DNA from: Setoptus koraiensis
Lineage: Eukaryota > Animalia > Arthropoda
Direction: 5' to 3'
Length of the DNA stretch: 64,000 nt
NCBI GenBank assembly: GCA_048013815.1
Contig: CM106585.1
Coordinates: 21,824,001-21,888,000, forward strand
Part shown: one piece after another, positions 2,619-55,288 of the stretch
How the letters are laid out: each line of letters starts with the position of its first letter
Position numbering within the stretch: position 1 is the stretch's first letter
The notes under the pieces: model-generated
Told to the model about the DNA's origin: nothing
The model's input: the letters and a program-made list of their open reading frames with translations, nothing else
Database searches by the model: none
Program-made: the position numbers and the translations under genes

Positions 2619-3510
2619 TACCAACGGACTCACAAAGAGATGATGCAAATCGAGTGCACTCATATGGAAAAAATAAACTGTTGATTACAGCCACCATGTA
2701 CCACAGTGAAAACAGATTGCTGCCCAACTGCATTATCAATACTGCTATGGCTGCAGCTGTATCGTTGGAACAAGAAAAAATAAACACTAGCAACAGTTTT
2801 TCGATAGCAGACAGAGATTATTTGTGTGCCAATAAGATGAATACAAAGCGGCAAGTGTCCAATATAACGTGAACACTGTGTGATTTAGATTCAATCTTCT
2901 TCATGCAACTGTCTGTGGTCTTCATTGGCATAAAATCTCTGCATCAGCATCAAATGTATCGAATACAAACAGAGGGAAAGAATTCTTCGCCGGACATTCG
3001 AATTCTAATCAAAATGCAAATCTGTATACCATATGTACAGGCATTAGTATTACTATTTTATTAAACCGAACCGCAAATGCAAGTCGCAAATGCTGTTATT
3101 ACTGGTAATCGACGTTTATCTTGTCCACTAGTAAACTGGTTCTATCAGATGTTCCGACACAGGATCTCATGCAAACAATTTTATATATTGTTTATATTGA
3201 CCATAAGATTAAAACTCTGGCCATTTATCCACGCCTTTATCACGATGTCATACATCAGAATGAGGACAATTTCCCGGAATATTATCATAAACGGGCAGTG
3301 TGTTTGCAATTAACGCGTCGCCTATTATAGAGAGGCTGTAACTATTGCATCATGAACATTTAAAAGTATTTCAACAAATTAACAATCAACAAGTTAACAT
3401 AGACACACATAAACACAATTTAAATTATTTATTAGCTTTTGTATTATTAACTATTGCATAGGTGCAAACCCTATACTACTTACTATAATATATTTATTTA
3501 CAATTCGCCT

Positions 3511-6500
3511 ATGCACATCATGAGAAGCAACCAAGATGATCTAGTGGCCAAGGAGATAGTGCAAACTTTGAGAGAATGGCACAGGATATGGCGAACAGTT
3601 TATCTGAGTAATCAGCATGACTTATTGGAGAGAATTTCCGTTGCCATAACAGATCTGTTCGATCTGAGGAAACAATTGTTGCACAATCACCAGAGTCACG
3701 ATCAATTGAAAGAGCTTAAATTTAGAATTGTTAGCAAAATCGATGCTGGCAATAAATTGTTGAATCTTGATCTGGTCCCCAGAATCGATTCACAGATAGT
3801 CAATCCCAGGGACATCTGTCCAATCAAACTACTTCAAATACATTGCGAAGCATCCTGTGATCAAATTTTGCCATACAGTAAATCGAGCTGTACTAATTCA
3901 AACATATCAAGTTCTACTTCAAGCAGTTCTACTTCAACAAATTCTTCTGCAACACATAATTTAAAATTGACTGTTAAAGATATTAATCTCAGTATATTAA
4001 ATCAAGAAGAGTGTACAGAGATGTATATTTCGGTTATTGATGCCACCAATATGAGCCAAATCAAATTTATGACAGAAAAGCATCTTGTCAGGTGTAGAAA
4101 TGACACTCCTTCTAGTCCTGTTAGTACAATTTTCACCGATTTCAGCAATACCGACATCGGCAGGGATCTTTATTTGTTCATACAAATCTATAGAATTGGT
4201 CGAATGAACATAACAGATGGCATGAAAACTTTAGGCAGACACCAAACATCAACAAATACCATTGCAGCTAACAGTAGACCTACTACCAATGGATCTACTA
4301 ATCCATCACAGTCCAACACCAACTCAACTCCTGGTAAGATTATCAACATGTTTAACAATATAGTTTCTATCGGTTTGTCAGAGAATCAGTATAAAAGACC
4401 TTATGGAGGGGCAATAGTGCCAATAACGGAAAGTGTAAGAGGTAGTCATCAAGAAAAAGAATATCAAGTAAAAATCAACGCTTGCAACGAAAATGATTTT
4501 CATCAACTTCACGAGACTTTGCTGAGGAAGCAAACAAGCAAACTTAATCAAACCTCACCGGGTATTGATATGAATATTGCACTCAGGTTTTTCAGAGGTG
4601 ATTATAATCTATTCTTGAAAGATGAATGTGTAACACGCAAACGCGGTTTTCCCGACGTTGTTATGCCTGGTGACTTCAGAAACGATCTTCATTTTGTCTT
4701 AGAAAGCGGTGAATTCGAGAAAGGAGGAAAGTCTATTCCTAAAAACATCGAGGCCTGCATAAGTCTGGTCGATAGCAAAGGAATAACTATCGATAAATGT
4801 ATTTCATACGGAAGTGGTGTTGCTAATGTTACAACTTACAAATCTGGAGTTTATTATCACTCCAACTCTCCGAAGTGGAATGAATCCTTAAAGTTCATTG
4901 TTCCTTTAGACGAATTTGAAGGTGCTCATGTGAGGATCGAATTTAGACATTGTTCCACCAAAGATAAAGGAAAGAGGTTCTTGGGATTCTGCTACATGCC
5001 TTTGAGCGACACGGATGGCACAGTCATTTCTAATAAGCAACACGAACTCTATTTATATCGATATGATGTGCAAAATTTCGAAGACGAAAATCTCAACATG
5101 TTAAGCTACACTCTACTGCCATACGGACCAGGTAGCAAGAATGCTAAAATGAATGGCTCCGTGCTGAATAGTTCCACTAGTCGTTTCTTTAGAAACACTA
5201 AAGAGGTAATCTATGTAAGCACATTCTTGCTTAGCACTAAATTGACACAGAATAGTGATTTACTAACTTTATTAAAATGGCGCGAACTAGATCCTGACGA
5301 TATCAAAGGCGCTCTTGAAAAAGTGCTCTACATGGATGGGGAGGAAATTGTAAAGTTTTTACAGGACATTTTAGATACCTTATTTGATACATTTGCAATA
5401 TTTTCAACAAGCGAAGTTGATCCGAAAAAGAATTGTTCGGGATTTATTTTTAAAGTTCTGGTGCACATATTCTTACTCTTGGACGAACCCAAGTACTCAC
5501 ATTTCAAGCCTGTTTTGGAAACTTACGTATCTGCTCATTTCTCGGCAACTCTAGTTTATAAAGGACTTTTATCATGCGTGAAACAGTGTGCCGATTATTC
5601 TTCGGATGTCGACAAACATGTCCCAATACAAGGATGCTTCAAATCTTTACACTACGTTTTCCAATTTATCATTCAATCTAGACTATTATATATCAAAGCT
5701 ACGGAACATAATAGTGACTCGGATCACTTCTTGGCGTTCGCTACCGACCTGCGTTTATTGTTTAAATCGTTTGATCGAATGTTGATGTTGCCAACCTCAG
5801 ATGTTACAGATGTTTCTGATAGCATTTTCACAATTCAAGCTGTCTTCCTCAAGGCATTTCCTTTTACATTCGATCAATTGTTGAAAGTGATGGAACCCAT
5901 GGACTTGACAGGACGAATAACCAGATTCATCGACGGCGCTTTCGAGAGACCAAATAAGATGGTAAGTAGTCTTTAAATATTCGGAAACTTTTCATCTAAA
6001 CTAATCGTATTTCCCGATCACAAACTAAAGTGATAGAATCTCATGTTTCTATGGAGAAACTCGATATTATTTCTCCCCTTTACTCCATCCTTACTGAATG
6101 ACCACTCGAACATCTTTTTTATTTCAGGGATGTTTCTGCTACTCATTACCTCAGACTATCTTGAAGGCTAGACTCAAATTTATTCAGGATACTTTAGAAA
6201 GCGTTCTTTGTCGAGACATGGAGCCTAGACAAAGAATTATTGAGACTTGTTGCAAACATCTAGAACATCTTATTTCGTCCATGAAAGAGATAAAGCTTTG
6301 TGCAGAGATACTGTCTACCATGCTTATAAAATGTTATGATTTTCACTGGCCGAAAATAAGCGAATTATGTATTCGCGAGGATAACAATACATCAGGAAAT
6401 CACAACCGTTTTGATCAACTCATCACAATCATAGATTTGAGAAAGATTGTCCGTCCTACCAAATATGCCAATTGCGATTTGCTAGCATGTCTATTGACCA

Positions 6501-9500
6501 ATGAACTTAGCCCTATCGTCTTGTTTGTCCTGAACTCCATAGTTGTTCTCCTGGATAAACTTATTAAGGATGCTCAATCGAACAAAATTCTCATTCAGCA
6601 ATATTACGCTTGTCTTTTCACAATTCTTAAACTAATGAATGAGCGAAACTACAATCAGTTCCTTAATAACTTGAGAGTCCACCAAAAAGAATTTCTATTA
6701 AGCTTTTTCAGGATCGTTAAGTATTCAAAAGAAATATATGACAAAGATTGGTTAGTCATGAAAATGTTGGCAGATTCTATCGCCGTGTGTTCGTTGGACC
6801 AGCTTTCAAGACCTCTCAAGATTGAAGTTTCAAATTCGTTATTCGATAAGACTCTTTGGAATTCATACTTCAATTTAACTATCGAAATTCTGATACATCC
6901 AAACCTGCAACTGGAGACGTTTACTGACTACAAGAGAACTTTTATACTTAAAAACTTCGGAGATCTCCGGCTCTGCATGGGAAGACAAATCTTGAACATG
7001 TGGAAAGATCTTGGATCCTTTAAAGTAAGCCTTTCACCGACTATGGTTATGTCTCTTCTAGAAATTACTTTTTTGCCCATTGATGAATTACAAAAGGAAA
7101 CCATGCCAGCATTCTACGATCTTATCGACACTGAATATAAACTGAAAAACGATTTTCGTCAGGTAGAAAAAAGTCTGATGGATAGCATGGAGGTTTCTAT
7201 CTTGAGTGGTAAAGGAGATACTTCGTATGCAGATCTATTTAACTCAATCCTAGTGGAAAACATAGAGTCGAAGTCTCCTGTCTGGAAGGATCAAGGTTTG
7301 AGATTTGCTAGATCTCTGAATCGGCAGATACATCTTTTGCTAGATTTGGGAAACATTCCAGATGTACCAGAGAAGAGGAACAAGCGGATGAATTGTTTGG
7401 TGAAACTTCTTTATTTCTACAAACTCGAATACAAGAGAAATGATATGTATGTGAAGTACATTTACGAATTGTGCGATATGCATCTTCCGTCATCCAATTA
7501 CGTTGAAGCTGCTTTTACCCTGAAGTTATATGCCGATATACTCGATTGGTCAAATAAGATATTGAACTCGTTGGATGGCTATCATTCGAGAGAGGAGGAA
7601 TGGAAAAGAAAAGAAATGTTATACTTGAGAATAATTGATTATTTCGACCAAGGAAAGTGCTGGGAAGAGGCTATATCTTTGTGTAAAGAGTTGGCCTTTT
7701 TTTATGAAACCTGCCTGGTTGACTACAGTAGATTATCCAATATTTTGAAAAGATTGGCAACGTTTATTGATAGTATCCTAAACAATCAAAGACCTGCCAG
7801 AGAATATTTCAGAGTTGGCTTTTATGGTTCCGATTTCCCTTCTTTCATAAAGAATAAAGAATACATTTTTCGTGGAAAGGAGTACGAGGGTTTGCCTGCC
7901 TTTATGCAAAGAATACTTAACGAATACCCCGATGCCACTATATTAAGTTCAGCGAGCAAGCAACAGATAAACTGTGACGCATCTGGCCAAAATATTGTCA
8001 TATCTAATGTGAAGCCTGTACCTTGTTTGGAACCACACCTCAAGTGCGAAGAAAAAAATATATCTGAAAAGATTATTGGATATTATCTGAACAACAGATT
8101 GGATACATTTTTTTACGATAAACCCATCCAGAAAGGTGTCGGAGATAAAGAAAACGAATTTAGAACTCTCTGGGTTGAGCGGACGACATTGAAATTGTAT
8201 GAGGCATTACCTGGGATCTTGCCATGGTTTGAAATTGGGGATAAAACTGTTACAGAAATTTCTCCGATAAACCTTGCGATAGAAACCGTGTCGAACATGA
8301 ACTCAGAAATGAGTAAGTTGATATGCAAATATAGGTATGAGAAAATTACACAGATCCGTCCTCTCACTATGCGACTACAAGGTGTCATAGACGCACCTGT
8401 CAATGGTGGTATCGCAGTTTTCATCGATGCCTTTCTAAGCCCAAAGTATACTCAGATAAGCCCTCATTGTTCTGAATTGGTATTAAAACTTAAGGATTTA
8501 ATCAAACATCAAATCAGAATACTTGAGAGTGGACTTCTTCTGCATGAAAGACTAGCTACTCCAGAATGGCAACCTCTTCATGCAATATTAGTCGAGAGAC
8601 TTAGTTCAATTAAATCTTCCTTGATTGATACACCTAGTCCAAACTCACCTCATCCATCGATGACATGCTCTGGGAGTGAAAGTGGTACAATCTCGCGAGT
8701 TTCTATAGTTAATCAGCCTCTACCTCCAATGCCGACATCAAATAAATCTAATATTCCAACAGACGAAGATGATTTCAGCTCAGATTCCAACTATGATGAT
8801 CAAATCTATTCACTAGTTCCCGACCCACCAGATAGGCCAATACCGAATGATGTTGAGCGACGAGATGATCGCTTGACAGCACTTAAAAGCCCTGAATGCA
8901 CTTCTTCGTTATCATCAATTGCAATAGTTAGCAACTTTCCACAAAATAGGCCAAAGAGTAATTGCTCAAATCTGAAAAGTAATAACAATTCACACGAAGT
9001 ATTTCCCAATAAGAATTTGCATTTGGACTCTCAATCTAGTCTTCAAGATATTGTTAATCATCGATTAGCACAAAACAATAATCTCTTGCAACACAAATCC
9101 TCAGAACAATGTTCATACAATAAGGATGCTAATTTTTCACTTTGGTCAAATCCGTCGTCCAACACCAACTCTTTGATTTTCGACAATGCATCGCCTGACA
9201 ATGCTCCACCTCTTCCCCCGAGAACCATGGATCGTATTGCTAGACACGAGATACTTGCTCATAAAGATAAGATATCGAATAATACCCTACGTACTAGCGA
9301 GCAGTTGGAGAGCGAAAAGGATCAATTGGAAGTAACCTCAGTCGATGAAAGTGCAAAGCTTGTTAAATGTGAGACACTAACTGTAAATAGTATTGCTACT
9401 CCCCCGCCGCTACCCAATCGTCAAGCCAAAGCTGGTTCAGATTCTGAGTTCAAATCAGTATCTAATAACAACACTAAGTGCACAATCAACGATCTGTTGT

Positions 9501-9535
9501 CTGAGGAAACTGAAGACTTTCCAACTGGAGAATGA
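3511..9535 (+). CDS. DOCK3/4 (spg): Dedicator of cytokinesis DOCK3/4 family (sponge-like) Rac GEF; 2 exons, ~1945-1950 aa
   Basis: Motifs TLREWHRIW...GNKLLNLDLVPR, C2/DHR1 (RGFPDVVMPGDFRNDL...GEFEKGGKSIPKNIE), DHR2 (YFRVGFYG, MRLQGVIDAPVNGG), and C-terminal PPLPPR/PPPLPNR. Exon 1 is 3511-5961 with a phase-0 GTAAGT donor at 5962. Acceptor is CAG at 6127 or 6154, both in frame. Start assumed at ATG 3511. Confidence 0.92.
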
Positions 9536-34828: not shown

Positions 34829-37800
34829 CTATTTTCTGTCTGAACAGACTCCATCGTGGCAAGCTTGACATAATGCCCTGAATGAATGATAATGAAAGCA
34901 CTTTATTACTAAATTTGTTTGTTGACAATAGTGCAAACGCATCTTGTAGTTATATATAAACATAATTCGCATTACTATGAATGCGAATGAAATGTGGTTC
35001 TCTTACCCATTGTGAGATGTTTTTGGTTTTCCAGCGCGCCTTTGTTTATCGATGGCTGGCATTTTGAACCCGTAATATAGCTGGCCTATTTTATTGTAGA
35101 AATTGTTTAACACTTTTCCAACTTCCTCCGGATACCACATTGCCCTTTCGAATTTGTTCGCCTGATTACAATGATCGCACTGTTGACCAAATAGTTTGAA
35201 GGCACAATATCCAATCTGATCCCAATTGTCATCGACATCCTTCAAGTCGGTGTCCTCAATAGATTTTTCTTGTACATCAATATCGATTTCCTCAGCATCC
35301 GCCGCTGCTATCTCAATCACAACCTGCTCGCACTTCAGATCTGCTTGCTTCTCGCTTTCGAATGCACAATCTTCATCTTGCTCGCCATTCTCGATTATCA
35401 CATCATTCTCGGTAGCTTGGTCGGCTTCGTTATCGGCGTCGTCATGGCCATGATGGTCGCCATCACCGCTATCATCATCATTTTCATTTTTGTTATCGCT
35501 ATCCGCGCTACAATCTTCACCGCAGCAACCGGATGATGAATGATCGCAATTGTCCGAGCTATCCGATGTGCTGTCCTCTGATATAGTCTGGAACAATTCA
35601 TACCAAAAGATCACTCGGCCCTTCATTGATGTCCAGCCGTGGCCACAATTGTCGCAACAAAAGCGCACCTTGGCCGAATCAACAAACATCTTAAATTTGC
35701 GATTTATACCCTGAATGTTGTTGTATAGCGGTTGTTGAGGCGGTTGTGGCGACCTATAGTGTCCATGATTCAATCTTGTTTGTGCGCGCATTGTTGTTGG
35801 CCTCATTAGCGGCTTAGTGTCTACCTCTTGCAAAAGCCATTTAGCGTTTGAGAATTGTTTAAATAACAATTCAAACTCCTCTTGCCACACTACGCTCATG
35901 CCGCTAATTAGGTTGTAAATAAAGTTTGAAGAGGGAGAGAGATCAAGTAATAAAAACAAATTAATCTCCATTGATTGAAATATAGTGCAATTGTAGTGTG
36001 CAGATTGTAAACAGCAGCGGTGATGATTTTAATATAATGTAACAATAATAACGATGCTGCAAACATCGATTGTTGTGATATAAAATAAAACATTGGACAA
36101 TAAAGATGATGATTTTATTACTTACTATGGTTGCTTTGAGCGAGTTTGCATCACTGTAACAGGTAACAATTGCAACAAATTGTAAGATTCGTCAGATAGG
36201 CAACTCATGGAATCGTCAGTTGTTGTATTGTATTCAATGAAGTCGGAATCATCATCATTAACAGCGTCGTTAAGTATGACTTTGTTTTGTTGTTGCTGTA
36301 GCTTTTGCTGGTAGTGATGAAGCTGATAGTTGGTTTGATTTAAATGGTGGCACGATGATGGTGTACAACTGTTTATTGGCACTATCTGCTGTAAATTAAT
36401 TGGCATGGGCATCACTGATTGGTGATATATCTGTTGATAGTGTTGCGTATGAATAGGATGATGATTATTATAAATAGTTGTGGCTGCCGGATGATGGTGA
36501 GCTGCCATCATGTGACAAGTGCTGGCAGCGGCAGTGGTGGCTATCGTTGGGGCCAGTGTAAAATAGTGGCCACCATGCTCAATGTGATTAGGCAAATAGG
36601 TTTCAAATGGCTGATGCGGCTGACCATTAGCGGTAGCGATATAATGAGCTGGCTGAAAGGAAATGGCCGCTGTTTTCATTGGCGTGGGTGGCGGTGGCGC
36701 AACCGAATAACAGTGGCCGTCATACTGTTTGAAATATTGTTGTTGTGACAATGGGGCCGGCAGCCTAGATGAATGATAACTGGATGATGACTTTTGGCAA
36801 CAATCAAGATCAGATTTCGTTGTTTGTGTCACTGAGTTGCTGTCCGCTGGCGTGCATTTTTCATTTTTTGTTGTCATTTGTTGCCTGTTGTTTGTACGCT
36901 GTCTGTTTCCATCAACTTGCTGACATTTTGCTTCTGTGGTGCTATTATTAATATTATTGTTGTTATTGTTGGCATCCGGATCGGGCACATCTGCGGTGGT
37001 TGCGATTGATTGCTGTTGATTTGTTATCGCAACAAGCGGATTATTATCATCACTATTGGCTGCTGAGCCGACACCAATAGCCAATCCAGCGGCGTTGTGT
37101 TGCTGATAGATATGTTGATTCATTAAATGCTGTTGAGATAACTGATGCTGCTGAGAATAGGCTGACGTTGTTGAGATTATCTGTTGATTTGAGGGCGACT
37201 TGCCACCGTCATTGTGGACGCTATTTCCATTTTGTTGCTGTTGTTGTTGTTGTTGCTGCTGCTGCTGCCCTATCAAAATATTGGCCGCAATGGGGCCGTG
37301 GCTGCCATTTAAATGAGAATGGTTATAATGAGAATGATTGCATGACGCCGTCGCCAATGTATCATTGATAGCCGGCTCAAGTAATATTGGTGCAGGCGTG
37401 GGCGGATGATGATAGGCGGCAAAAGCAGTAATTGGCATTGGCATTGATGCTTGCATTGGCACGGACATGGGCATGGGCATCGCGGCTATTGGCATATTGG
37501 ATATGGACATTGGCGCAAATTGATGATGCTGATATTGCATAATAGCGGCATTGTGTTGCTGTCTGGTCATATTAGCTGGCTGATAATAAATTGTGTGCTG
37601 ATTGGAGCGATGTCGCTGCTGTAAATGATGCTGCTGCTGATGATGATGATGGTGATGTCTCCATGTCTGGTGGTTGTAATAAGATTTGTTGTTGTTGTTA
37701 TTGTTGTTGCTGTTGTTGTTGTTATACAATGATCTGTTGTAGGCTGTCTGATTGCTGCGTATGTTGCCGTTACAATTGTTACTGTTACTGTTATAATGAT

Positions 37801-38980
37801 AATGTGAACTGTTGTTAATGTCCACAAATTGATTATTGCGGCTCTTATTACAGTGATTAACTGAATGACCGCTCAATAACGGTCTAGGTAACGTCGATTG
37901 TTTGCTACTACTAGCTGCTGCTGCTGCTAATTCATCGATTGCATCATCTTTCTTATTGGCCGGCTCTTGTTGCGCCCCTTGAGCAACGTCACTGGCATGT
38001 CGGTTTGACCCGTCGGCCGACTCACCTGTCTGTAGCGTGTCTGTCGTGGTCACATGAGACGACGACGACGACGACGACGACGATGCTGGTGACAATGACA
38101 CAATGGCCCCCTGATGCGTTAATCGGTGTTGAGCGATGCTGCCTTTGTCTATGTTGGTGTCCAATGACGTCGATGACGACAACGACGATGACAGCGAACA
38201 ATCGGTCATTGAGCTCGTCTCGTCATAATTGCCAGAATCCTGTTCGCTGGATTGGCTACTATTTGACACAGAAGGCGACAATTTCTTCACTTTCACCCCA
38301 TCTATATCAGGCACATCTTTTTCCCTATCTGCTGCTGCTACTGCTGAATTGTCGCCAGTAGACTCATGATCGAGTGGCGATAATGATGACGGGTTTTCTC
38401 CATCTTCATTAGGTGCTGCTGACTTTGGGGCACCTAATGAACATTTCTTTGAGTTGTTTCGCTGAGCATCGCAAGCAGTCACCATCTGAGTGGTTCCATC
38501 AACCACTTTGCTGTCACCAATCAAATCATTTGGTGCATCATTTTGGGTTTTGGGGCATTTAATGAGCTTGTTGCAAACCGAGGCAAAAGACAGCGGCAAC
38601 TTGCAATTCAATTTGTCACCAGTCGGCTCATGATTATTGTTGGCCTCGTCGGGCTCGTTTTGTTTGTTTGGCGTGTTGTTGTCATTAAAGACCGTTTGTA
38701 AAATCACATTTGCTTTAGATTTTAATTTGTTTTGCTTGTCAGTTTGCCTAAATAGTTTGCTGCCGGGCGACTGTTGCTGTTTGTTGCTATCTGCTGTCAC
38801 CGTGTGCTTCCGGTCTGCCAGTGTCGCTTGTCGGTTGTTGAATTCAATTTCGGCTGCTTTACTGTGACGACTGTTGTTGTTTATAAGTTGTTGGTGTTTC
38901 ATTCTAGCTTCTTCTTCTTGTTTATGCCTGCTAATGTAATTGTCTAAATGTAGTGTGCAGTCTGTTCGCTTGGGCCCCAT
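34829..38980 (-). CDS. Large low-complexity protein with C-terminal 3CxxC (ZAR1/RTP-type) zinc finger; 3 exons, ~1266 aa
   Basis: Exon 1 is 38980-36126; intron 36125-35904 (GTAAGT..TAG) splits the apparent TAG into TA|C = Tyr. Exon 2 is 35903-35007 (MSVVWQEEF...DSAKVRFCCDNCGHGWTSMKGRVIFW...FKLFGQQCDHC...GKPKTSHN). Intron 35006-34878 (GTAAGA..CAG). Exon 3 is 34877-34829 (GALCQACHDGVCSDRK*), supplying the last CxxC. Total 3801 nt, in frame. The exon 2-3 join is strongly supported; the exon 1-2 join is likely. Confidence 0.78.
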
Positions 38981-38996
38981 CAAATCGGCTAGATCG

Positions 38997-39061
38997 CTGT
39001 TGTTATCTAATAGATGGATGTTGTTATCTAATAGATGGATGTTGTTATCTAACAGATGGAT
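38997..39061. repeat. 21-bp tandem repeat x3 (TGTTGTTATCTAATAGATGGA)
   Basis: Three near-identical units just upstream of the first ATG of the 3CxxC gene. Confidence 0.85.
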
Positions 39062-39569
39062 GGCACTAGTGACACATAGCAGTTGTTCTACTTTGATTAA
39101 ACTTGGTACAAAATAATCATTTGAATGGTTTTCAATCAGCACACACAGCAACTTACACAAAGCCAAGTGATAGATGGATATAGATGATATATGGCATATT
39201 GTTTATATTAGATACAACAGTAGATAGCTGTAAACAAATAAGAGTAGACAAACAGCATAAGTAAGAAGACTTAACAATGTAGTTGTCTATATACGAACAG
39301 ATTGCTACATGTGAATAAGGGTGCCAAAGACAATGTTGATGTCTAGGCTTGTTGATGTTGGTTGCGACGATGATGCTGAGTGGTGGTTGTTGCGGAGTTG
39401 CACTTAATAACTAAACTTAATTGACATATCATATCATGTATTTGTTGTTACCTTATTAATCTAACCAGCTATCTAGATTGACTTTAATGTGCAACAAATG
39501 TGCGTTAATAGAGCAACATTAATGAGTGCATTTGCGACACTATCTACGCTGTATGGCGCTAGTTTATGG

Positions 39570-55009: not shown

Positions 55010-55288
55010 ATGATTCGCTTAATATCAAAGATACGAAGGCAGCTGTTTCCCAAGCAGTATCCCACATTGTTGGTATTCCAAGACGGATCTACCGTTACTA
55101 TTCGTCACCATGAGCCCAGAGAAATCATTAAGTTACCCGTGACTTATGCCTCGTGTCTTACCACAGTAAGCAAATCAGCCTGGCAATTGAGACGGCGCCC
55201 ACTCGAAGCAGTAAAGGAAACGATCAAAAAAGACAAGATAACAATAGATCCCCAGCAATACATAAAGAATATGAAAAAGAGAAAGTAG
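55010..55288 (+). CDS. mRpL55: Mitochondrial ribosomal protein L55 (bL31m)
   Basis: QYPTLLVFQDGSTVTIRHHEPREIIKLP matches YP.LLV..DGSTI.IRY.EPR..L.MP. Confidence 0.85.
   Translation: MIRLISKIRRQLFPKQYPTLLVFQDGSTVTIRHHEPREIIKLPVTYASCLTTVSKSAWQLRRRPLEAVKETIKKDKITIDPQQYIKNMKKRK

Follow-up and report, generated by a model that had tools for sequence, protein, structure and literature searches.

A three-exon gene model for a conserved 3CxxC zinc-ribbon protein with an inflated N-terminal region, probably from an eriophyoid mite

The minus strand of the window, i.e. of the whole stretch of 64,000 nucleotides that was analysed, very probably carries one gene of three exons, whose protein of about 1266 residues joins the 3CxxC finger of a conserved family to an inflated N-terminus. 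The parts of the gene model are the following:

38990..39062, no strand assigned: tandem array of 21-nt units (3.5 copies), shortly before the ATG in what is putatively the 5' leader (Tandem Repeats Finder)
36126..38980, minus strand: coding part of exon 1, with the ATG, 951 codons and the TA of a split Tyr codon (ORF list and sequence)
35904..36125, minus strand: intron 1, 222 nt, phase 2, GTAAGT...TTAG, the first G of which gives an in-frame TAG (sequence)
35007..35903, minus strand: exon 2, with the third Tyr base, 298 codons and the GG of a split Gly codon (PF13695 and homologues)
34878..35006, minus strand: intron 2, 129 nt, phase 2, GTAAGA...CAG, leading directly to TAA if unspliced (sequence)
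34829..34877, minus strand: coding part of exon 3, with the third Gly base, 15 codons (ALCQACHDGVCSDRK) and the TAG at 34831-34829 (sequence)

Exon 1 starts with the ATG at 38980 and runs for 951 codons without a stop to 36128. Next comes the TA at 36127-36126, and with the GTAAGT at 36125-36120 behind it the unspliced frame reads TAG. Intron 1 is pyrimidine-rich at its 3' end and its acceptor AG lies at 35905-35904; C35903 completes TAC (Tyr), after which the frame continues with G-M-S-V-V-W. Exon 2 encodes an N-terminal helix (VWQEEF..LF), the first and second CxxC and the greater part of the Zn_ribbon_3CxxC domain, and terminates at GG (35008-35007) directly before GTAAGA. At the acceptor of intron 2, cag at 34880-34878, G34877 completes Gly and is followed by the 15 codons of exon 3, which agree with the C-terminus ..LCQACxDGVCxDRK of contiguous homologues. 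Summed along the minus strand, the exons give 951+1+298+1+15 = 1266 residues. The preliminary description had proposed three exons that rejoin in frame to about 1266 residues, a TAG overlapping a GTAAGT donor with an acceptor 222 nt further on that leads in frame into the 3CxxC exon, and a third exon with the final LCQACHDGVC. All of this is found in the sequence, the junctions are backed by homologues and the third exon matches their C-termini. An open frame of 1013 codons at ~ 42% GC is not attainable by chance. The locus was found in three sequencing runs, none of them an RNA run, and their genomic contigs are colinear with it without joints (4601 bases compared). The depth over the locus is uneven in the genomic runs X2 and X3; contig k-mer depth is sensitive to repeats. 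The 21-nt repeat upstream of the ATG has a Tandem Repeats Finder score of 125 with 94% matches.

The first junction can be followed through the relatives with two further features:

36128..36184, minus strand: conserved 'LLP...TRxRQ' motif, the last 19 residues of exon 1, YNLLQLLPVTVMQTRSKQP (PSSM, BLAST)
35897..35899, minus strand: invariant Met codon, four bases inside exon 2 (alignment A2, column M2)

In the relatives this motif, also written YNLxxLLP...TRxxQ, adjoins an invariant Tyr-Gly-Met, and 'Q[SA]YGM' is conserved across chelicerates. With an ungapped PSSM built from 19 relatives, the end of exon 1 ranked first among 55,079 six-frame positions of the window, with 17.5 bits as compared with 4.3 bits for the next. 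In BLAST, the last 19 residues of exon 1 formed the top HSP against the relatives P0133, P0121, P0130 and P0123, and the match to P0133 (E 0.007) lies exactly at the ORF end. A bias-corrected hmmsearch of six-frame pieces with a 24-column junction profile was not significant and placed the exon-1 piece 12th; we took the ungapped PSSM as the informative test of the junction over hmmsearch. The corresponding locus of the sister species (L001) has both introns as well, in unchanged phases. Its intron 1, with a length of 309 nt versus 222 nt here, has the donor TA/GTAAGT (slash, exon boundary) and the acceptor cag/T four bases ahead of the ATG. The identical TA/GTAAGT at the same position and in the same phase occurs in Limulus (L006) and in Panonychus citri (L005), and all four loci share the donor pattern CAA-NNN-TA/GTAAGT and the acceptor pattern AG/Y-GGN-ATG. 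Intron 2 is present in L001 and absent from the related contigs L002-L004, from Limulus and from Panonychus. Both splice junctions are confirmed by homology at the level of sequence comparison, which also gives good support to a great age of intron 1 within the chelicerates and to its phase-2 position inside a Tyr codon. Related mites have lost intron 1 and read straight through.

The 222 nt between the two reading frames might alternatively separate two genes, a 951-codon ORF that ends with the TAG at 36127-36125 and a 3CxxC protein that is translated from the ATG at 35899 and has an own promoter in the gap, be it as the only state or as the source of an extra short isoform. Such an arrangement would fit with the Met being invariant in 13/13 aligned family members and being the annotated start of several relatives, and with an AATAAA at 36118-36113 right behind the TAG. 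However, the conserved motif and the Tyr before this Met derive from the 3' end of the upstream ORF together with the split codon, relatives encode both parts in one ORF, and donor, phase and acceptor position are kept in the sister species, in Limulus and in Panonychus. The AATAAA is not conserved in L001, and the proteins from Logan contigs that seem to 'start' at the Met do so because the gene caller chose an internal ATG inside longer open frames; in the related contigs L002 and L004 the caller began at such an internal Met. We consider two genes quite improbable and retain the single three-exon gene. The Met at 35899 could start a short isoform; it is also kept where the ORF of relatives clearly runs through it. 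This Met and the AATAAA at the start of intron 1 leave room for separate short products.

The long ORF seems to stop because the donor of intron 1 creates a TAG after TA, and the TAG lies over the donor due to a phase-2 intron with a GT donor in a conserved Tyr codon. The preliminary description had seen in this arrangement a possible switch. According to this explanation, regulated retention of intron 1 would yield a finger-less protein of 951 residues with a function of its own, and in an unspliced transcript the frame indeed ends immediately at the TAG with a defined truncated product. However, a TAG arises wherever a GT donor interrupts a TAY codon in phase 2, the same arrangement occurs in Limulus, Panonychus and the sister species with an upstream exon as short as 48 residues, and the intron-less mites are unable to make a finger-less product. 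There is no sign of selection on the stop. As the same TA/GTAAGT is found in Limulus and Panonychus, the TAG is no evidence of regulation and is an inherited by-product of intron phase; a switch is improbable. In the three-exon model, the stop codon overlapping the splice donor illustrates that such an overlap can be very old and a trivial consequence of intron phase.

The C-terminal module is spread over exons 2 and 3 with the following elements:

35645..35656, minus strand: first CxxC (CDNC), exon-2 residues 83-86, with C83 and C86 invariant in alignment A2
35213..35602, minus strand: acidic insert of 130 residues between the first and the second CxxC, within the zinc ribbon (alignment)
35168..35179, minus strand: second CxxC (CDHC), exon-2 residues 242-245, with C242 and C245 invariant in alignment A2
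34870-34859, minus strand: third CxxC (CQAC), exon 3 (sequence)

Exon 2 alone matched the Pfam family PF13695 (Zn_ribbon_3CxxC) with 47.8 bits and an E-value of 2.2e-12, above the gathering threshold (cut-off 23), which bears out the earlier assignment of a 3CxxC finger. The match falls into two stretches that are parted by the acidic insert, in which 46 of the 130 residues are D+E and 5 are K+R; a comparable insert was found only in the sister species (P0001). With the exons read separately, all three CxxC motifs stand in invariant or nearly invariant columns of the alignments A2 and A3. Homologues of exon 2 numbered 129 in a word search and 190 in a HMMER search. An alignment of 13 bilaterian sequences, from mite to amphioxus, has 58 invariant columns, the family blocks DSAKVRFxCxxCGHGWTSMKGR, KLxGQQCxxC, MWYPEEV and GKPxxxHN are all present in the window protein, and its identity to family members is 54-60% over aligned columns. 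These comparisons give good support to full membership of the C-terminal 315 residues in a strongly conserved family of invertebrate 3CxxC zinc-ribbon proteins (PF13695). The closest named relatives belong to the eriophyoid mites Fragariocoptes and Aceria, and no insect was found among the matches listed. The arthropod origin proposed earlier holds, with an eriophyoid mite, not an insect, as the probable source; a Drosophila-like dipteran was discarded on account of these relatives, of the lack of insects among the listed matches and of a compact genome with few introns.

The named members of this family are mostly labelled automatically as RTP3/4-like, and the nearest named vertebrate match is an RTP3-like protein of hagfish (E ~ 1e-5). 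The N-terminal W..F..L helix before the first CxxC resembles the RTP layout. The automatic names and the hagfish match would be in line with a membrane-anchored protein that escorts chemoreceptors or other receptors, similar to RTP1-4. However, no transmembrane segment was found, the maximum Kyte-Doolittle mean over 19 residues being 0.99, 0.52 and -0.28 for exons 1, 2 and 3, and the protein ends with ..GVCSDRK, five residues beyond the last Cys. The hydropathy values agree with the absence of a transmembrane segment noted in the preliminary description. RTP4 has the order finger, disordered region and transmembrane segment (PMC12431671), and in the window protein the finger is C-terminal, not N-terminal. 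An escort function is highly unlikely for the zinc-ribbon protein described here. As a membrane anchor is missing, we infer that the protein is soluble.

The N-terminal region has a strongly biased composition. Exon 1 contains 11.5% S, 10.7% N, 10.0% Q and 6.4% H; its Q+N-rich stretches have 40-47% of these two residues, and 60-residue windows reach 47% Q+N. No Pfam family matched exon 1, and a Q/H/N/S-rich N-terminus without a folded domain, as previously described, is in agreement with both the composition and the blank Pfam result. For the N-terminal 930 residues no homologue was detectable in word searches or by BLAST against the N-termini of relatives. The word searches, with the whole of exon 1 and with residues 1-380, were blank and carry little weight because low-complexity candidates swamped both of them. 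When exon 1 was compared by BLAST with the N-termini of L002, L003, P0133, P0129 and 23 long relatives, only the terminal motif and compositional matches came up. The region is considered coding because of the length of its ORF and because of analogous regions in relatives. Uninterrupted ORFs with a Q/H/P/A-rich N-terminus and the finger are present in L002 (918 aa), L004 (658 aa) and L003 (381 aa), and a HMMER search of public assemblies revealed about 20 relatives, 590-1205 aa long, in which the finger occupies the extreme C-terminus. UniRef contains A0A6G1SQL7, an uncharacterised protein of 1147 aa from Aceria tosichella, in which a long N-terminus and the finger are encoded in one ORF. Due to this entry and the about 20 long relatives, the protein can no longer be called undescribed, as it had been at first.

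The preliminary description had suggested a comparison of the N-terminal lengths of orthologues. The N-terminus of the window protein is the longest found with 952 residues, and those of the other eriophyoid-like members have 200-844 residues versus 59-238 in other chelicerates and other animals, of which a few are annotated without an extension. An inflated N-terminus in every sampled eriophyoid-like member is well supported by these lengths, and so is a fast-evolving Q/N/S/H-rich character of the region. The N-terminal 952 residues are probably disordered.

The preliminary description had also called the protein ZAR1-like. An AF2 model was obtained for the natural homologue P0004 (pLDDT 79.5), and its best match in the PDB is the RNA-binding domain of human ZAR1 (9jko_A), with a weak score (Z 4.9, VIA; Foldseek E 0.08). 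The alignment of 9jko_A with this model, which is that of the homologue and not of the window protein, has an rmsd of 4.0 with 84/98 residues aligned and 23% identity; it covers the model range 85-217 only and leaves the extra N-terminal helix-strand unit of the family unaligned. To our knowledge, the ZAR1 RNA-binding domain is the only solved member of PF13695. Neither phmmer nor the A3 profile matched the ZAR1 domain in searches of all PDB sequences including 9jko (E up to 1 and up to 10), and there was no ZAR1-named match among the named relatives examined. Of the earlier assignment, the order of N-terminus and C-terminal finger stands; the fold match is weak, and similarity by sequence or profile was not found.

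In ZAR1 a disordered N-terminus precedes a 3CxxC domain that lies at the C-terminus and binds RNA; formation of the storage compartment in oocytes is driven by the N-terminal part (PMC12799850). The mite protein could be the counterpart of ZAR1, i.e. a germline RNA-binding protein whose N-terminus drives a storage condensate of maternal mRNA. The same order of parts, the best fold match in the PDB and the Q/N-rich stretches of 40-47% point in this direction. However, the solved ZAR1 domain is unmatched by sequence or profile at E up to 10, the named relatives are mostly RTP3/4-like, with no ZAR1 label among those examined, the extra helix-strand unit lies outside the ZAR1 alignment, and the long N-terminus is confined to the eriophyoid-like members, with 59-238 residues or none in the others. 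A ZAR1 counterpart of this kind is improbable.

Literature searches found no functional study of invertebrate family members. The finger of RTP4 binds nucleic acids (PMC12431671), and by analogy with ZAR1 and RTP4, the two branches of the superfamily that have been studied, the zinc ribbon of the mite protein would probably bind nucleic acid, most likely RNA, and the disordered regions would probably give multivalent, granule-type behaviour. A role in binding nucleic acid, combined with a disordered region of the granule type, is plausible for the protein, and a function in condensates or mRNA storage may be suggested by analogy. We speculate, with considerable doubt, that the invertebrate 3CxxC family represents an ancient bilaterian RNA-granule protein from which ZAR1 and the RTPs diverged in vertebrates, which insects have apparently lost, and of which eriophyoids inflated the disordered regions 5- to 15-fold. 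If this were true, inflation in the most streamlined animal genomes known would point to positive selection for condensate-forming capacity, with the germline and the sensing of RNA in antiviral defence as examples.

In conclusion, the locus provides a sound gene model within a known invertebrate family and no new kind of system. The model is verified by comparison and concerns a gene that ORF-based callers split or truncate. The family is among the most conserved 3CxxC proteins outside vertebrates, and genome-reduced mites have gained hundreds of low-complexity residues in it, although streamlining is the general trend there. Should the finger bind RNA, disordered regions of naturally graded length (200-950 residues), all with a constant binding module, would be available in these mites.

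Compared with the invertebrate 3CxxC or RTP3/4-like family, with A0A6G1SQL7, Fragariocoptes setiger GZH46_02479 and proteins of Limulus, Ixodes, sea urchin and amphioxus as examples, the window protein aligns over the whole C-terminal module and shares the Q[SA/P]-Y-G-M junction, the phase-2 intron and the LCQACxDGxC ending. With the eriophyoid-like members it further has in common the long low-complexity N-terminus and the LLP...TRxRQ motif. These members carry a long insert (167-297 residues) behind the N-terminal helix and ahead of the first strand, whereas the acidic insert of 130 residues in the window protein sits between the first and the second CxxC. Eriophyoid genomes are >80% intronless (PMC7738191); unlike its close relatives, which are intronless, the window gene keeps intron 1 and has the extra intron 2. 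RTP1-4 share the 3CxxC zinc-finger domain, but their finger is N-terminal, with a variable region behind it and a transmembrane anchor at the C-terminus, whereas here the finger is C-terminal behind 952 residues and there is no anchor. ZAR1 and ZAR1L belong to the same PF13695 superfamily and also carry a C-terminal finger behind a disordered N-terminus; they differ in that sequence similarity is not detectable, the N-termini are unrelated and the fold match is weak and covers part of the module.

The gene on the minus strand at 34829-38980 is read here as three exons, a model that we regard as very probably correct on comparative grounds, and these exons sum to the 1266 residues predicted in the preliminary description. 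Its elements are the following:

38980-36128, minus strand: exon 1 open reading frame, ATG at 38980 followed through 951 stop-free codons
36127-36126, minus strand: TA, then a GTAAGT donor; the unspliced frame terminates here as TAG
36125-35904, minus strand: intron 1, 222 nt; acceptor AG (35905-35904) preceded by a pyrimidine-rich tract
35903-35007, minus strand: exon 2, 298 codons; C35903 and TA form Tyr, followed by G-M-S-V-V-W-Q-E-E-F; ends in GG before a GTAAGA donor
35006-34878, minus strand: intron 2, 129 nt; acceptor CAG (34880-34878)
34877-34829, minus strand: exon 3; G34877 finishes the split Gly codon, then 15 codons ALCQACHDGVCSDRK with the third CxxC, and a TAG stop

No sequencing run recorded as RNA contained the locus; contigs from the three runs that cover it follow the genome colinearly and show no joints. 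Two of these runs, X2 and X3, are probably a single data set filed twice and hence not independent: both comprise 55.7 Mb, their contigs are identical, and they share two C>T differences (35408, 35440) under different organism labels. Upstream of ATG 38980 the frame is open, and 38990-39062 holds 3.5 copies of a 21-nt unit (94% matches) translating as HLLDNNI three times. Contig depth over this repeat is raised 4- to 17-fold in X2 and X3, so the unit may recur elsewhere in the genome. Genes are dense in the window and include long single ORFs; on the plus strand (3454-9535) two adjoining long ORFs represent one DOCK-family exchange factor (DOCK_N, C2, TPR, DHR-2 lobes A-C), the gap of ~120 nt between them presumably being one short intron.

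Exon 2 alone matched Pfam Zn_ribbon_3CxxC with 47.8 bits (E 2.2e-12; gathering score 23), which bears out the 3CxxC finger first recognized by eye. The match falls into two stretches because an acidic insert of 130 residues (46 D+E, 5 K+R) parts the first from the second CxxC. No Pfam family was found in exon 1, in which S, N, Q, A, T and H are abundant and Q+N reaches up to 47% in 60-residue windows, and a word search with its residues 1-380, a low-complexity query, gave no matches. No 19-residue stretch in any of the three exons has the hydrophobicity required of a membrane span, in agreement with the transmembrane segment having been described as absent.

The comparative case for splicing is strong. 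In the sister species, a 1.85-kb genomic contig (L001) with 48% identity across exon 2 carries an upstream ORF ending in ..SRTKQA, followed by TA/GTAAGT (the slash marks the splice site), and its acceptor cag/T lies four bases ahead of ATG, again yielding Tyr-Gly-Met. Intron 1 measures 309 nt there versus 222 nt in the window with the arrangement unchanged, and the second intron is present in identical phase. In three related contigs lacking intron 1, the low-complexity N-terminus and the finger form one unbroken ORF (L002, 918 aa; L004, 658 aa; L003, 381 aa). An exhaustive HMMER search with exon 2 retrieved ~20 relatives, 590-1205 aa long, whose finger lies at the very C-terminal end; one, of 1147 aa, is a UniRef entry of Aceria tosichella, an eriophyoid mite. 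Such read-through relatives are explained by eriophyoid genomes being >80% intronless and having a median intron length of 170 bp (PMC7738191). In public assemblies, the homologues on these contigs had been begun by gene callers at an internal Met (3480 in L002, 1274 in L004, 3594 in L003); the open frames run 100-459 codons further upstream, and the database proteins P0002, P0003 and P0005 are therefore N-terminally truncated.

The exon junction itself carries a motif. Before the invariant Gly-Met, long relatives read ..YNLIxLLPIxAxPTRTRQA-Y and other chelicerates ..PWKQS-Y. An ungapped position matrix from 19 long relatives, scored at 55,079 positions across the six reading frames of the window, gave as top match precisely the 19 residues that close exon 1 (17.5 bits; runner-up 4.3 bits). 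Pairwise BLAST returned modest E-values (0.007 to 0.7), and hmmsearch with this short profile, corrected for bias, did not reach significance; the weight of the motif therefore lies in its rank, in its falling exactly in register with the donor, and in the Tyr that the split codon provides.

The donor CAA-NNN-TA/GTAAGT of the window recurs in the annotated genes of Limulus polyphemus and Panonychus citri, whose acceptor reads AG/T-GGN-ATG; intron 1, which interrupts a conserved Tyr codon in phase 2, is thus an old chelicerate intron. The split stop codon is no device, since a TAY codon cut after TA by a GT donor always reads TAG. Retention of intron 1 had been proposed as a switch towards a finger-less protein. 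We consider this idea unlikely: the TAG follows from the phase, it also arises in horseshoe crabs behind an upstream exon of just 48 residues, and intron-less mites cannot make a finger-less product. No sign of regulated retention was found at the locus or in the comparisons. An AATAAA immediately past the TAG/donor (36113-36118, minus strand) could permit a polyadenylated finger-less transcript; however, this hexamer is common in AT-rich introns, and the sister locus has not kept it. A short isoform could likewise begin at the invariant Met that lies four bases inside exon 2, but all relatives whose frame clearly passes through retain this Met, which is therefore conserved as a residue and need not be a start codon. 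Intron 2 (L001 1322-1419), in phase 2 of the Gly before ALCQAC, is common to the window and the sister species only; Limulus, Panonychus and the mites without introns lack it. It may represent an intron gain, in a lineage that otherwise stands out for losing introns.

Read as spliced, the protein has an N-terminus of 952 residues, the longest among the compared relatives. The lengths in orthologues, suggested earlier as a check, are 200-844 residues in the eriophyoid-like group versus 59-238 in other chelicerates and animals, a few non-eriophyoid relatives being annotated without any extension; the N-terminus is inflated in every eriophyoid-like protein sampled. In other eriophyoid-like proteins an insert of 167-297 residues separates the N-terminal helix from the first strand, whereas the window and the sister species have a short linker there and the acidic insert (35213-35602) instead. 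These expansions go against the general streamlining of eriophyoid genomes.

Judged by its sequence, the C-terminal module is part of an invertebrate 3CxxC family of striking conservation: an alignment of 13 members, drawn from mites, ticks, Limulus, Lingula, echinoderms and amphioxus, has 58 invariant columns. Its closest named relatives come from the eriophyoid mites Fragariocoptes and Aceria, which speaks for a mite genome and against a dipteran one, and most named members carry the NCBI automatic label RTP3-like or RTP4-like. Two database entries are probably artefacts: P0011 of Halotydeus destructor ('Serine proteinase stubble'), combining PF13695 with a trypsin domain, a fused gene model, and P0008 of Ixodes scapularis, whose N-terminal 70 residues recur at its C-terminus, a mis-joined tandem copy. 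Crustacean, nematode, cestode and hagfish matches are distant. The very divergent crustacean members, together with the lack of insects among the named matches listed (120 from word search, 150 from HMMER), suggest a possible loss in Hexapoda of an otherwise pan-bilaterian family. Our literature search turned up no functional study of an invertebrate member. The gene adds a new member to a family that is known but unstudied, its disordered sequence marking a lineage-specific extreme.

The likeness to ZAR1 holds only in part. By sequence it fails, as the human ZAR1 domain of known structure was detected neither by phmmer nor by a 63-sequence profile at E up to 10. The fold was read from a good AlphaFold model of a natural contiguous homologue, P0004 (pLDDT 79.5), the window exons being handled separately; its best PDB match is the human ZAR1 domain 9jko_A, a weak match (Foldseek E 0.08, VIA Z 4.9) over 84/98 residues with 23% identity that omits the family's N-terminal helix and strand. 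Compared with RTP proteins, the window protein lacks the defining membrane anchor. It combines a very strongly constrained zinc-ribbon module with long low-complexity regions. In ZAR1 the finger binds RNA and the N-terminus builds a storage compartment (PMC12799850), and the finger of RTP4 binds nucleic acids (PMC12431671). By analogy with both, we hypothesize that the zinc-ribbon binds nucleic acid, probably RNA, and that the disordered regions would confer multivalent, granule-type behaviour.
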